Positions 44,424-61,893 are shown, counted from the first letter of the whole stretch. The stretch: DNA of 63,714 nt, filler included, from Neoconidiobolus thromboides FSU 785 (GCA_025603075.1; 4 parts of 4 records of this genome joined end to end with filler, not necessarily neighbours in it); one strand, 5' to 3'. Notes: generated by a model not told the origin, from the letters alone. Translations and numbers: made by a program.

Positions 44424-44850
44424 TTTATTAAAGTTTTTCAAAAATATATTCGTTGTTTTTTAAATAATGATAATATTCCTTTTAAATACAAAGTAATAGT
44501 TCCTTTTTTCTAATATTTATAAATGACTATGTTCTTAGATATTTTATGATACTAAAGTGAGGGATTAGAAGTCATTAGATTTAATTGTATAAAGGAGATA
44601 AATTCAAGAAGAGGTAAGGAAATAAATTACTCAATTAATGGGTAGTATTTAATTGAAGAGTGCTTGGTGATAGTATTTTTTTATATAGTATTGAGCTAGT
44701 AGTAAACTTTGTCTAAATGATTGATGTTTTTGGAACATTAAGACTTATTTATATGAGTCAATACATCAAAATTTAAGTTATACATAAGCACAATAGCTTT
44801 AAGAGCCTCTAATAAATAAGAATGCTACTGGCTGAAAGAGCATATATATA

Positions 44851-44948
44851 TATAGATGTCTATTTCTGTATAAAAATTTAATAATATTTTTTCTGTTCAA
44901 CATCGTTAAAAGTCGAAAAAATGATGAAAGTCAAAAGCATCCCCACAT
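44851..44948 (+). mobile_element. Degenerate MITE family copy
   Basis: gatgtctatttctgtataaaaatttaataat...gttaaaagtcgaaaaaatgatgaaagtcaaaagcatccccacat. Confidence 0.6.
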
Positions 44949-45737
44949 TTAAAAATAAAAATTATTTTAATGTACACGTCTGTATCTTTGTTGGTAATGT
45001 TTTATAAAAAATGAAAGGTATTTAGAAAAGGCCATCCTATCTTTTAATTACTTACTAGTATATATTACACAAATTATTTGCTAACATATATTATACTATC
45101 CCAATTCATTTAGGACTTGAAGTTTAAAACTATAACATCAAAATAAATAGTTAGGACATATAATTTTTTTAGTCAGAATAATAAACTAAATATAAAGATA
45201 AATACTTTTTATATACAAAATTATCTCCTTCGAATCAAGTGGAAGACCCTTTACAGAACAGAAGTAAAATTGGCTATCTACCGCTCCTAGTGGATATACA
45301 ATAAAGGATTTAAGGGTCAACTCTTCAGCCTTGTGCCTTGATGTTGAATGATTCATTACGTGATCAATATCATACATTGGGGTATCAATCGACTTTTTGA
45401 TTAAGTTTATAAACTAATTTGAATTTAGATAAAACATTTACCCTTTCTAAGTCCAGAATTTTAAAAACTTAACATATGTTATAGTTCACAAAAGCGTAGC
45501 TATAAAGCACAACTTACTTTGAGTAATAGAAAAAAAGTCACATGTGGTTGAAGCCACTGTAACGCGATAGACAGGAAGCAAAAAAGGAAAGTTATCTGAT
45601 AGAGATTCAAGAGGTGATGGATGCCACGGAGCTTAACTAAAATAGACTTTTTAGATTTAAGGAGAAGGGATGTAGAGTAGGGGTTTAGTATTCAAGTTGA
45701 TTTAGTGTTGTTGATAGCCTTAAATAAAAAAAGAAGG

Positions 45738-45844
45738 ATTTGGGGACATGTTTTTTTGCTTAAGAATTTTATTAATAATTTTTCCACTCAAATAGCGCTT
45801 AAAAAATAGAAAAGTGGTAAAACCAAAGAAAACATCACCACAAT
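45738..45844 (+). mobile_element. ~105-bp MITE family copy
   Basis: tggggacatgttttttgcttaagaatttt...ttttccactcaaatagcgcttaaaaaatagaaaag...aaaacatcacca. Confidence 0.85.
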
Positions 45845-47010
45845 TAAATAAATATGTATACTTTTCATACATAGAAATGATATATTTATTTATTTAAATC
45901 AACAAAATTAAAATTACTTGAGAACAAAATTTTTATCGAAGGAATGTATTTATATAAAGATTTTAAAAAAATAAACATTTAAATAAACTATTTTTTAATT
46001 GAACTCATTTATTATCAAAATCTAAAACTTATTGTCTAAAGTTGCTTTGTTTTAATCATTCTATTTTTTGAGAATATAACGTAAATTGAAATTTATGAGC
46101 CAGTATGAAGGATATGAACTATTTCCCTAATTACCATCGCTTATAAAAAAACTACTAGTAACTAAACATACGGCTCGTGCCTTCATACGATTTACAAGTT
46201 CAATGTTACTTTATTTCCAAATTCAATCTCAAAGTGTCTTTCTTTCTTGACCAAATTCAAGTTAGTAGGGGATATAAAATCACAACACCAATAAATTATT
46301 AAATAAAAAATTAGCATTTACAAAAGAGGAAGGTTCATAAATGAAGCCATTACTATAAATAAGAGATTTATTGTTTTTATAATGAAAAGGAGAACAAAAT
46401 CAAATAAACTATGGTGATTTTCATTGACGTTTTTTCCTTAGCGGAAAAATATAAAACTTTGTTTTCTTCCGATTTTAAAAAGCGATAAGTTAACTTTCAC
46501 CCTATCATCTTACCCCTTTAAACCATGATTTCTAAAATTAATAGAGCCAATTAAAAGAGATCTAAAGTTCAACACTGCGCATGTTAGAAGGTTTATTGGG
46601 ACTTTAAATTATTAGCTACTAGTTTACAAGATTCAACTTTATTATTACAATCTAGTTCTAATAAATTAAATAAAAACGTACTACATATTAAATAACACCC
46701 GTTCAATTTCTCTGCAATTGGTTTAAAAGTTTAAGTTGTTGAGTTATCCTTCGCCAATTGAAGAGTTTTCAAATTTCAATTAGAATTTATTAATTTTATC
46801 GGCTTTACTCATACTTTAATAGTGTAAAAAGATAGCTTAGTTGATAGTATAGAAAGATAGCTTGAGTTTCAATAAGTTTAAAGGGAAAAGACAAGTTTAA
46901 TATTTTTTTATAAAATATCAATTTCCGCCAAATTTCATTTATAAAAAAGAGAGATTCAACTAACATAACTAAAGAGAATGAGTAGCAATAAGTTAACAAA
47001 GAGTTATAAT

Positions 47011-58509: not shown

Positions 58510-59197
58510 ATGGAAATATATTTTACATTTTAAACTATTAGATGACAGTAAGGGAAAAAACTAGTACCATTTAACTATAAGGCTCTCCTTTAAATAAACA
58601 TTTTATTTCAGAAAAATTCTTAAACCTTATATAAAATAAACTTTTTGATTTTTACTACACTGAATTATATTGGTTGTAGGCTTAGCGTTTTTAAACAATA
58701 AATTGTAAGCTTATTAGTCAGCAATGTCAATACTGGAGTAGATGAAGCTATTACTATATTAATAAGGCTAAACTTATTATGATAAAGTAGAAGACTAATA
58801 AATGCTATTATTTATTTTTCTTAAACAATACTTTTGGCTCATCTGTAACCCTTTAAAATTAAAACGATATATTAAAATCATATTTTAATACACTTATAAT
58901 AGTATCATCGAAAATAGCATAACTGGTTTTGAACCTTTATTTATATTATTATCATTCTTATATTTGGTTTTAAAAAACATAAGTCACACCATCCATTTGT
59001 TTTGTTAACCACAAAATCAAAATTAGTCAAAAATAATGATAAAGAAGGCATTGAAAACATTGGAAGATTCATCAAACCTCAACAAGGCTATAATTACTCA
59101 CACTGTTTGGTAAATCTAATTTAAAAAGCAAAAAACCTAAAATATTTTTAAAGCTAAGTCATTGATAACAAACAGGATATAGCATTTATAAGTTTAT

Positions 59198-60070
59198 TTA
59201 GTAATATATTCCATATCTATCATAAGAATAACCGCGTGGAATGCTTGAGGTATTTGGCTTAGTGTATATAACTGAAGAGGAGACAGAAGAAGTTTGAGTA
59301 GGAGTGGTCCCAGAAATTGGGGTAGAACTTGATGAAACCATTTGAGTACTAGTTTTTGAAGGCGAATCTACACTGGTAGTTGAGGTACTGGGTGGAACTG
59401 AAGAAGAGATGGAATCAGTTTGAGCTGGAGTGGTCCCAGGAATAGACGTAGGGCTTGATGGAACAATTGAAGTGCTAGTTTTACCAGGTGGGTCAACGCT
59501 GGTAGTTAAGGTACTTGGTTTAGATGAGGAAGATACTTTTGGATCGGAAGTAGACTGGACTGAGGTATTTGTCGTACTAGAAGTGTTGTTTTGCGTGGTT
59601 GTAGCTTTAGGTTCAGACGTAACTATGTGAGATGTTGATTGAAAATTTGTACTATGATTACCATTTATGGTATTATAGTTATTGTTAGCAACACTATTAT
59701 TATTATTTACAGTGTTATTATTGTTATTAATAATGCTATTATTATTATTTATAGTATTATTATTGTTGTTTATAACGTGATTATTGTTATTTATAGTATT
59801 ATTATTGTTGTTTATAACGTGATTATTGTTATTAGTAATATTGTTATTGTTATTTACAGTGTTATGGCTATTGTTTTTAGCATTACGATTGTAATCGTCT
59901 TTTCCATATTTCCCTTTTCGATCATTATATTTAGGTGTTTCTTTATGGCCACCTAAAATATTCTTTAGAATGTTAAATTCATTGAAAAGTCCAAAAGTAC
60001 GACGCTCCACTGAAGCGCCGGATATTATACTTAACAAAACTAAGGAAGTGATAGTTTGGACTGTTTTCAT
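59198..60070 (-). CDS. Secreted Asn/Ser/Thr-rich protein, paralog 2: signal peptide, VERR, amphipathic helix, 10 Asn heptads, S/T/P repeats, Tyr-rich tail
   Basis: True ATG at 60070 (MKTVQTITSLVLLSIISGA); the ORF-track start at 60094 is a TTG. Intronless. Confidence 0.88.
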   Translation of the reverse strand: MKTVQTITSLVLLSIISGASVERRTFGLFNEFNILKNILGGHKETPKYNDRKGKYGKDDYNRNAKNNSHNTVNNNNNITNNNNHVINNNNNTINNNNHVINNNNNTINNNNSIINNNNNTVNNNNSVANNNYNTINGNHSTNFQSTSHIVTSEPKATTTQNNTSSTTNTSVQSTSDPKVSSSSKPSTLTTSVDPPGKTSTSIVPSSPTSIPGTTPAQTDSISSSVPPSTSTTSVDSPSKTSTQMVSSSSTPISGTTPTQTSSVSSSVIYTKPNTSSIPRGYSYDRYGIYY

Positions 60071-60865
60071 TTTTTGATTTTCAAATTGATTCAATATTGT
60101 TTATGAGTTTATTATTTTCTCTCCAGGAGGAAATAAAATTATTATTGTTTGTTGGGTTTTTTTCTTCCATTCAGTTGTTTTATACCTTCTTATGGATATG
60201 AGTATAGTAGGTGTAATACTATTACTCCATTACTTTTCTAATTTAATCGATAAGTAGCACGTATCAATTCGTTTTCTGTGGTAACAGTTCCCCTTCTTTT
60301 TTATTTTTAACTTTATAATATATTTTTTTATAAAGTTTTATTTTTAGCTATATTTTTTTAATTTTTGTGGTTAGCTAAATAATTTACCTTACATGGTATT
60401 ACTTTTTTTATTAATTTTTACCTCATATAGCGATTTTTGTCAAGAAAAGAATTTAACAAATCTACGTACTATTTATAATACTGTAAACAACTTCATTCTA
60501 TAATTAGGTTGGCATTAATAAGGGTTTGTTTAGTTCAATTAGTGTCTCTCTAAACAGCCCTTCAAACTTTTCTAAACTCTCAGAAGTGGTAATTATTGTT
60601 TTAATTAGCAAAAATAACTAATTGTTATCGAAAATATAAACTACTGACCCTAAACTAGGTAAAGTTTTGATGATCAAAAAAGTATAAATGTATTCCATTT
60701 TTTGAATCATCAAATGATGGCAAAAAAAGAGAAAAACTAGCACTGTCTAGTTATATGCTCTCCTTCCACTATATGTACAATAACACCCTTTTTAAAATAA
60801 AATGTCTAATTAGATTTTTTTAACTTTTATCATAATGAGCTGTTATATTCTGTCATGTTTAGCAC

Positions 60866-60968
60866 TTGGGCATGTATTTTTTTATTTAAGAATTTTACTA
60901 ACAACCTTTCTGCTCAGATAGCGCTTAAAAAATACAAAAAGTGATGAAATAAAAAAAACATCCCCTTT
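60866..60968 (+). mobile_element. ~105-bp MITE family copy
   Basis: ttgggcatgtattttt...gatagcgcttaaaaaatacaaaaagtgatgaaataaaaaaaacatcccc. Confidence 0.86.
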
Positions 60969-61454
60969 AGTACATTATAACCACACTTTTCAGAGATACT
61001 AACATTCGAGTATATAAAACTATAACTGCTTTAGTTAAACTTGAACTTACTAGCTTAAAGTGAAAGACTACAAATGCTATTATTTACCTTGCTTAAACAA
61101 TATTTTGGGCTTACTTGTTATCTTAAAAAATTGAAACAACATATCAGAAACTCACTCCCAGATATATTAGTACTGTCAAAAATGATATAGCTATTTTTAA
61201 ACTTATATTATCAGTATTATTGCTATTCTTTTTAAAAAATATTAAAAATGCAACACATCGAAGTGTTCTGTTAACTATTAAATACAAAAGTTAGCTGGGA
61301 GCAAGTAAATAGGTATTAAAAAGCACTGAAGTCTTTTTAAACCTTGTTAAGGCTATATTTGTTTGTTTATTTTTAAATTTAATTTAAAAAACAAATAAAG
61401 TTTTTAAAACATGGATCATCTATAATTAATAGAATATAATAGTTACAAATTTAT

Positions 61455-61893
61455 TTAATAATATCTTCCGTAATGATATGGGCGACCACTTGGCTTAGTG
61501 TATGGAACTGAAGAAGAAATAGAAGTGGTATGAGTAGGTGTAGTTCCAGAAGTTGGAGTAGAACTTGGTGGAATTACTGGAGTACTACTTTTTCCAGGTG
61601 AATCAACACTAGTAGTTGGGGTACCTGGCTTAGTAGATGCGACTGAAGAAGAAGCAGGGCCAGTCTGGACTGGAGTAGTTACAGAACTTGGAGTGGAACT
61701 TGATGAAGTTACTGGAGTACTGCTTTTTCCAGGCGAATCAACACTAGTGGTCGGATTACTAGATGTAGTAGGAGTAGTTCCAGGAATGAGAGTAGAACTT
61801 GATGGAATAATTGAAGTACTAGATTTACCAGGGGAATCGACACTGGTAGTTGGGGTACCTGGCTTAGTAGATGCGACTGAAGAAGAAGCAGGA
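61455..61893 (-). CDS. 3' part of paralog 3 (S/T/P-rich repeats plus Tyr-rich tail); 5' end hidden in the gap
   Basis: Minus frame open from the gap: ...TTSVDSPGKSSTSIIPSSSTLIPGTTP...TTSVDSPGKSSTPV...SSSVPYTKPSGRPYHYGRYY*. Homologous to TTSVDPPGKTST...GTTP...SSSVIYTKP...YDRYGIYY* of paralog 2. Confidence 0.85.

Follow-up and report, generated by a model that had tools for sequence, protein, structure and literature searches.

Asparagine heptads in a predicted secreted protein of a clustered orphan family from Neoconidiobolus thromboides, with a sub-threshold, motif-level resemblance to the grass ice-binding roll

The gene at positions 59198–60070 (minus strand) of the 63,714-nucleotide (nt) stretch of DNA analyzed here (hereinafter the window), from Neoconidiobolus thromboides FSU 785, an entomophthoralean, insect-pathogenic fungus (Zoopagomycota), encodes a 290-amino-acid (aa) protein with an array of ten strict asparagine heptads (hereinafter the target). 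Judging from its sequence, there is about an even chance that the target is a glycosylated, lineage-specific protein of the surface or matrix whose beta-prone Asn module is maintained by selection. The gene belongs to scaffold MU626579.1 of the assembly GCA_025603075.1, which is present in the window as a whole (44424–61893; 17,470 bp, 26.5% GC), and the NCBI annotation of this assembly has the same 290-aa gene on it. The gene is transcribed: Logan contigs from RNA runs span 59206–60123 at a depth of 3–8, with zero coverage on either side across the examined region (58900–60400); the elevated depth at 59665–59868 comes from short low-complexity cross-matches and was disregarded. The features of the gene, in window coordinates and residues of the target, are the following.

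59198–60070, minus strand: whole gene, a single exon of 290 codons plus a TAA stop (open reading frame, translation and NCBI annotation).
60014–60070, minus strand: predicted signal peptide, residues 1–19, with an S-G-A end (sequence reading; helix 2–16 in the AlphaFold2 model).
59999–60010, minus strand: VERR dibasic, residues 21–24, a candidate Kex2-type site (identical in all four paralogs).
59948–59998, minus strand: family-defining motif TFGLFNEFNILKNILGG, residues 25–41 (four-paralog alignment).
59876–59947, minus strand: Lys/Tyr/Asp-rich linker, residues 42–65 (translation; conserved in the third paralog, P0001).
59666–59875, minus strand: ten strict Asn heptads, residues 66–135, 61% Asn (translation).
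59750–59833, minus strand: two identical 42-nt copies, encoding HVI-NTI twice (exact string identity).
59645–59665, minus strand: eleventh, degenerate unit NGNHSTN, residues 136–142 (translation).
59255–59644, minus strand: Ser/Thr/Pro-rich, mucin-like region, residues 143–272 (translation).
59201–59254, minus strand: Tyr-rich, hydrophilic C-terminal tail, residues 273–290 (translation).

The ten heptads conform to the consensus N-N-N-N-[N/H/S]-[T/V/I]-[I/V/T/A] in strict register, with zero indels, and the order of units from the third heptad on is HVI, NTI, HVI, NTI, SII, NTV, SVA, NTI. A preceding sequence-only reading of this DNA had reported ten strict heptads at 59654–59863 (residues 70–139), which is the same array with a 4-residue offset. 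Translation gives exactly the alternation of NT(I/V) with HVI, SII or SVA that it read from the third unit on, a 14-residue pattern, and the perfect 42-nt duplication that it saw underneath is verified by exact string identity (59750–59791 is the same as 59792–59833). Tandem Repeats Finder detects a period of 42 in the array with 89% matches and a period of 21 with 74%. Residue identity is 0.59 at lag 7 and 0.71 at lag 14; in 10,000 random permutations of these residues, the lag-7 value was never reached, so that the periodicity is beyond chance. When the entire 17.5-kb piece was scanned in six frames with a regular expression, the only other array of this type lay in a paralog (53746–53829), indicating that the array is not generic genome background. 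In the transcript of a related strain, the array is one heptad shorter, with 21 nt missing in the duplicated part and the unit order NIT NIT HVI NTI SII. An alpha-helical coiled coil, which would need hydrophobic residues at positions a and d, 3–4 residues apart, was considered and rejected: the residues other than Asn sit side by side at positions 6 and 7 and are mostly beta-branched, and AlphaFold2 (AF2) builds strands. Designed coiled coils come up only as weak compositional matches in the Protein Data Bank (PDB; E 0.04–0.2).

The remainder of the protein has the layout of a secreted glycoprotein. The putative signal peptide combines an N-end Lys, a hydrophobic core and small residues at -3 and -1, and is followed by the VERR site, after which the chain may be cleaved; AF2 places helices at 23–28 and 32–39 in the TFGLFNEFNILKNILGG region, at a predicted local distance difference test (pLDDT) value of about 52. 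Eight N-x-S/T sequons are found in residues 66–142, and the Ser/Thr/Pro region includes a 126-nt unit (59270–59519; 2.0 copies with 77% matches in Tandem Repeats Finder). Thus, Ser/Thr repeats of variable copy number and dense glycosylation sites, the marks of secreted or wall glycoproteins, are both present. A search of the whole protein against Pfam at E up to 1 returns zero families, adhesin and wall-protein domains included, and a hydrophobic C-terminus of the glycosylphosphatidylinositol (GPI) type was looked for in the target and not found: the tail is hydrophilic and rich in Tyr, Arg and Gly, on which ground a GPI-anchored wall protein was rejected. The repeat part is flanked on both sides by segments enriched in Tyr, Lys, Gly, Arg and Asp (59876–59947 and 59201–59254), with KGKYGKDDY on the N-side and GYSYDRYGIYY at the C-terminus. 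The third paralog shares both Tyr/Lys-rich flanking segments, including a similar Tyr-rich tail at its C-terminal end. As a speculation, such ends are reminiscent of adhesive or cross-linking segments.

The target belongs to a family of at least four clustered members that share a signal peptide, VERR and a TFGLFNEFNILKNILGG-type motif. The sequence-only reading had proposed a secreted family, and this holds up in the predicted signal peptide and the four clustered members; the fungal source that it assumed is likewise correct. In all four, VERR is followed by the consensus T/N-F-G-L/I-x-N-E-F-x-x-x-K-N-x-x-G-G. The relevant loci are as follows (L003 positions refer to scaffold MU626331.1).

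53467–54879, plus strand: 470-aa paralog with about 15 Asn heptads followed by NNSGTNSNTS-type decapeptide repeats (translation and MAFFT alignment).
61455–61893, minus strand: third paralog, 3' part, with Ser/Thr/Pro repeats and a Tyr-rich tail, cut by the scaffold end (translation).
59948–60010 (minus strand), 53527–53589 (plus strand), and L003 7711–7773 and 10061–10123: VERR-motif sites (four-member alignment).

The heptads of the 470-aa paralog are in the same phase and at the same protein position as the array of the target. This paralog consists of 35% Asn and 23% Ser, with about 15 NNSGTNSNTS-type copies and 80 N-x-S/T sequons; the sequon counts in three paralogs are 12, 80 and 77. The 5' half of the third paralog comes from a different scaffold. 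The protein P0001 (127 aa), located at the end of scaffold MU626331.1, is 68% identical to the target over residues 1–79, and the last 74 nt of this scaffold (L003 10309–10382) overlap exactly with window 61820–61893. The shared 74 nt imply that MU626331.1 and MU626579.1 abut inside the Ser/Thr/Pro repeat and that P0001 is the missing half; the repeat number may be collapsed at the join. The third paralog is both the closest relative and the tandem neighbor of the target and lacks the array, containing only the proto-units KNYNYST and IDNNHST. The fourth member, 0.9 kb upstream of P0001, is annotated as 415 aa, its first open reading frame (ORF) being 366 aa, and contains about 13 heptads. An exhaustive phmmer search against 1.84 billion representative proteins identifies P0001 as the single true relative, and a Pfam search with every whole family member matched no family. 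A word-index homology search with residues 1–66 gave no match, its length window having excluded P0001. BLASTP of the target against the 470-aa paralog yields no alignment, probably due to composition-based statistics or low-complexity masking; MAFFT aligned the shared N-terminal motif.

Comparison of the arrays among the paralogs bears directly on selection. Between arrays, 41–54% of the Asn–Asn pairs differ in codon, a level that amounts to saturation when an amino acid has only two codons. Nevertheless, 76–79% of the Asn positions are kept as Asn between paralog arrays, the replacements being mostly Ser or His; positions 1 and 2 of the heptad are Asn in every unit of the three arrays (10/10, 16/16 and 14/14), and positions 6 and 7 are almost always T, V, I, L, M or A. 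Neutral change at AAY codons produces several non-synonymous substitutions per synonymous one. With codons randomized yet the Asn pattern kept, the array appears to be under purifying selection rather than to be slippage debris. Its copy number is labile, as illustrated by the absence of the array from the closest paralog, the loss of one heptad in the related strain and the perfect 42-nt duplicate. The N-terminal motif region is the most constrained part of the family: the ratio of non-synonymous to synonymous substitution rates (dN/dS) is 0.03 for residues 1–64 between the 470-aa and 415-aa paralogs (13 synonymous and 2 non-synonymous differences), and constraint is weaker between the target and the third paralog, with a dN/dS of 0.4 for the N-terminal region. 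The motif may act as a processed peptide or as a docking head.

These observations are compatible with the following scheme. The product would enter the secretory pathway via its N-terminal signal peptide, and a probable trimming after the invariant VERR would expose the conserved, probably helical 17-residue motif. With eight sequons in the array and many potential O-glycosylation sites in the Ser/Thr/Pro region, the mature protein would probably be extended, extracellular and heavily glycosylated. Its Lys/Tyr-rich and Tyr-rich ends, combined with the lack of a GPI signal, might speculatively point to a non-covalent or Tyr-mediated hold in the wall, coat or matrix. Each seven-residue unit contributes one beta-branched pair (T/V/I, then I/V) amid Asn, and the module would most plausibly serve as a beta-prone stacking or spacer element the length of which shifts fast through gain and loss of units; it could be a beta-solenoid within one molecule, a cross-beta element between molecules or a flexible stalk that bears glycans. 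Given the biology of Entomophthorales, the protein might contribute to an adhesive coat on conidia or hyphae; a literature search on entomophthoralean conidial adhesion returned general reviews only, with no direct support for a coat role.

Among known systems, the target is comparable to fungal cell-wall proteins of the flocculin, Als, DAN, TIR, FIT and KRE1 families, with which it shares a signal peptide (predicted in the target), variable minisatellite-like repeats, long Ser/Thr/Pro stretches and dense glycosylation sites. The target differs from them in having neither a Pfam adhesin or wall domain nor a hydrophobic GPI-type C-terminus and, to our knowledge, none of these families has been described as containing such an array of Asn heptads. 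The nearest named feature clusters in the ESM Atlas are FIT1, flocculin, DAN4 and KRE1 (scores 0.64–0.70), which can be taken as a lead only. Several points weigh against the interpretation as a surface or matrix glycoprotein with a selected module. These Atlas scores lie below a level that is also reached by shuffled proteins; the codon argument uses repeat alignments in which the units need not be orthologous; the RNA support is shallow and comes from the contigs of a related strain; and the confidence of both AF2 and ESM is low everywhere.

The sequence-only reading had also aligned the heptads position by position with those of the ice-binding protein of the grass Lolium perenne (LpIBP). 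The ice recrystallization inhibition domain of such proteins forms eight coils of 14–15 residues in which the motif NxVxG/NxVxxG recurs; ladders of Asn and His line the interior, and ice is bound on a flat side rich in Thr and Ser (PMC5744647, PMC7383708). This likeness was recovered independently by database searches, although at sub-threshold scores throughout. The LpIBP structure, 3ULT, is the top match among 177,635 PDB sequences (E 0.093), in the register that had been proposed, and the isolated array matches a single Pfam family at E up to 10, PF21300 (LbR_Ice_bind, “Grass antifreeze beta roll”). Membership of the target in this family of rolls, by contrast, does not hold. Against PF21300, whose gathering cut-off is 30 bits, the isolated array scores only 13.3 bits (E 0.09, HMMER bias 47.6), and neither of the two paralog arrays matches; with the three-array family profile, 3ULT drops to E 0.44 and is outranked by some designed coiled coils; and an hhalign comparison with three PF21300-type arrays yields a probability of 0.06%. 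A search for the fungal ice-binding type, DUF3494, gives no Pfam match (whole protein at E up to 1, array at E up to 10), and literature searches on Asn-rich heptads in fungi and on PF21300 returned nothing useful.

At the level of the motif, the target shares with LpIBP the seven-residue half-coil, with Asn or His followed by an exposed T, V or I and then by Val or Ile, and the 14-residue alternation of NT(V/I) with H-V-(V/I); LpIBP is secreted, as the target is predicted to be. The [N/H/S]-x-[I/V] part of the LpIBP motif is present together with the alternation, whereas all ten units have Asn in place of Gly and none of the coils has 15 residues. The turns of the target are all four Asn, without Gly or Ser, the array is 61% Asn with five putative coils versus eight, and the host is a fungus as opposed to a cold-hardy pooid grass. 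The resemblance is therefore real at the motif level and is most simply explained by convergence rather than family membership.

The non-family phmmer matches (five altogether) further clarify the distribution of such rolls. Three of the five resemble PF21300: P0004 (51.9 bits), P0005 (40.0 bits) and P0002 (28.6 bits, just sub-threshold), all of which are proteins from metagenomes and uncultured eukaryotes. A C-terminal RING finger is present in P0002 and P0005. The fusion of PF21300-type rolls to RING fingers implies that the fold, even if adopted, would not imply ice binding. PF21300 thus reaches non-grass proteins with no obvious ice connection, and motif-level likeness to this family is no evidence of ice binding. 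The other two matches, P0003 and P0006, are bacterial-looking secreted proteins with arrays of V-Y-N-N-G-G-T heptads N-terminal to CHB_HEX_C_1 and Fn3_assoc domains; except for a weak match to a glycine-rich protein family, their heptad array goes unrecognized by Pfam.

Structure prediction, which the sequence-only reading had named, with a Foldseek comparison to LpIBP, as a check, yields strands at the heptad spacing, and 3ULT leads one structural ranking, but the pLDDT stays at about 50 and Foldseek is null. AF2 run on the full protein as a single sequence gives a mean pLDDT of 44 (34–50 in the array), and the ESM Atlas, which contains the identical sequence, has a model with a mean pLDDT of 0.43. 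For residues 56–150, AF2 was run on a 5-row alignment with the two paralog arrays, P0002 and P0005; the resulting model consists of ten 4-residue strands at an exact 7-residue spacing (pLDDT 49, predicted template modeling score 0.31), but P0005, which passes PF21300, and P0002, which falls just short, may have steered it. Foldseek finds no match for the full-length model and only matches with E above 3 for the array model. VIA-align against 48,161 chains places 3ULT first (Z 8.4) at a root-mean-square deviation (rmsd) of 8.2 Å, a Z of 7–8 being, according to the tool's own note, what models lacking any real match commonly reach at best.

The best geometric superpositions of the array model are with RTX blocks, as in adenylate cyclase toxin, and bactofilin (rmsd 2.3–2.5 Å over 84–93 residues, Z 6.9–7.8). 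However, identity to these is 4–9%, the target lacks the Ca-binding GGxGxD nonapeptide, the coil length is different and the Z values are at background. UspA1, LpxA-type helices and the spruce budworm antifreeze protein, which are left-handed folds, superpose at 8–10 Å. The poor fit of left-handed folds and the good fit of right-handed ones suggest that the array model is right-handed and mirror-related to LpIBP, for which the original paper reportedly describes a left-handed roll. A review calls the LpIBP roll right-handed (PMC5744647). The heads of UspA1 and YadA-like proteins resemble the array in their repeats of about 14 residues with N-S-V-A-like units (UspA1: E 2.8–3.4, Z 8.2 at rmsd 8.0), but UspA1 is bacterial and trimeric, with Gly-rich turns, and the matches are not significant. 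The array model is compatible with some beta-solenoid, yet it is not evidence for one; the likelihood that the array contains ordered beta structure is put at roughly one in three, and so is that of an ordered beta-solenoid of any function.

Several alternatives to a surface or matrix glycoprotein with a selected Asn module have to be weighed. The array could be functionless Asn-rich filler that arose by slippage or unequal crossing-over in an AT-rich genome and that the protein tolerates as a disordered linker, the heptad period reflecting an amplified 21- or 42-nt unit. The base composition (26.5% GC), the perfect 42-nt duplication, the variation of copy number among strains and paralogs, the low confidence of the predicted structures and the dispensability of the array in the closest paralog all fit this explanation, but the Asn pattern and the beta-branched pair persist despite randomized Asn codons, arrays within the 17.5-kb piece are confined to one family, and three paralogs hold the same heptad phase at the same protein position; filler is accordingly rated as rather unlikely. 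A cross-beta, functional-amyloid module, in which heptads of different molecules would stack, as in curli and yeast adhesins, into an adhesive or cohesive layer, seems quite unlikely: such a module agrees with the regular periodicity and the abundance of Asn and beta-branched residues, the AF2 beta model, the architecture of a secreted surface protein and the presence of a CsgA fibril (Z 6.2) and bactofilin (Z 7.8) among the structural matches, although these matches are at the background level for unmatched models and dense N-glycosylation would be expected to hinder tight stacking. Under yet another scenario, which we judge distinctly unlikely, the protein is a precursor of a secreted peptide: Kex2-type cuts at VERR and at the next dibasic would free the N-terminal motif, and the repeats would be a carrier. 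Indeed, the invariant VERR directly precedes the most conserved part of the family (dN/dS 0.03), and a second dibasic is found 20–26 residues downstream (RK in the target, KK in the 470-aa paralog). Unlike in known Kex2-processed repeat proteins, however, the motif occurs once per protein, which rules out a strict repeat protein of that kind; furthermore, the array itself appears to be selected, and the N-terminal dN/dS between the target and the third paralog is 0.4.

The explanation favored by the sequence-only reading, a two-sided, LpIBP-like beta-roll with 14-residue coils, inward ladders of Asn/His/Ser and Ile/Val and an outward Thr row, acting in ice recrystallization inhibition or nucleation, we regard as very improbable indeed. 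It can draw on the fit of the heptad register to N-x-V-x-G with Asn replacing Gly, on 3ULT as the best PDB match, PF21300 as the only Pfam match and three PF21300-type phmmer matches, and on the AF2 strands at the heptad spacing with 3ULT as the top distance-matrix match (Z 8.4). Yet every score is sub-threshold, with a pLDDT of about 50, and the 8.2 Å fit to 3ULT involves an apparently mirror-handed model. One face would be lined by no more than four or five Thr, the two faces reading I-T-T-T-T and T-V-V-I-V, and since the Asn of a sequon would lie on the same strand face as its Thr, a glycan would probably cover that face. The array also shifts by a single heptad in a strain variant and is absent from the closest paralog, PF21300-type rolls occur with RING fingers, and N. 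thromboides is a mesophilic soil saprobe and aphid pathogen, which likewise counts against an ice roll. A broader version, a solenoid with all-Asn turns that would resemble the grass ice recrystallization inhibition domain, have an independent origin and attach to an ordered surface through a flat Thr/Asn face, the surface being ice or, as would be more plausible for an aphid pathogen, crystalline cuticular wax or chitin, is doubtful to about the same degree as the peptide precursor.

Each outcome would be of interest. Should the array fold, a beta-solenoid of about 60% Asn would put the design of Asn ladders and turns to an extreme test and would mean that the LpIBP-type heptad had originated a second time, independently. 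It might also have a bearing on the attachment of forcibly discharged entomophthoralean conidia to the cuticle of insects. A genuine surface-binding solenoid would be the first LpIBP-like surface-binding roll described in fungi. If, on the contrary, the array is unfolded, it would be a clear case of a low-complexity Asn repeat under purifying selection in a secreted protein, as opposed to AT-rich debris.

Some additional observations pertain to the transcript and the surrounding sequence. In the RNA contig from run X5, the 5' end of the gene (59873–60120) contains 10 mismatched positions, and a 1-nt insertion with a compensating 1-nt deletion at 60046–60049 falls inside the signal peptide. These differences indicate that the source of this RNA is a diverged strain or a sister species rather than the sequenced isolate. 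The antisense, Ile/Val-rich ORF on the plus strand at 59639–59956 was dismissed as a by-product of the AAT/AAC repeats, and the antisense ORFs at 53778–54779 and 53948–54859 are by-products of the repeat of the 470-aa paralog. The neighboring genes are unremarkable, encoding an RNF10-like RING protein, a SPRY-domain protein and adenylosuccinate synthase (47752–48726, the 49987–50427 region and 56095–57850); the adenylosuccinate synthase gene is located between members of the family.

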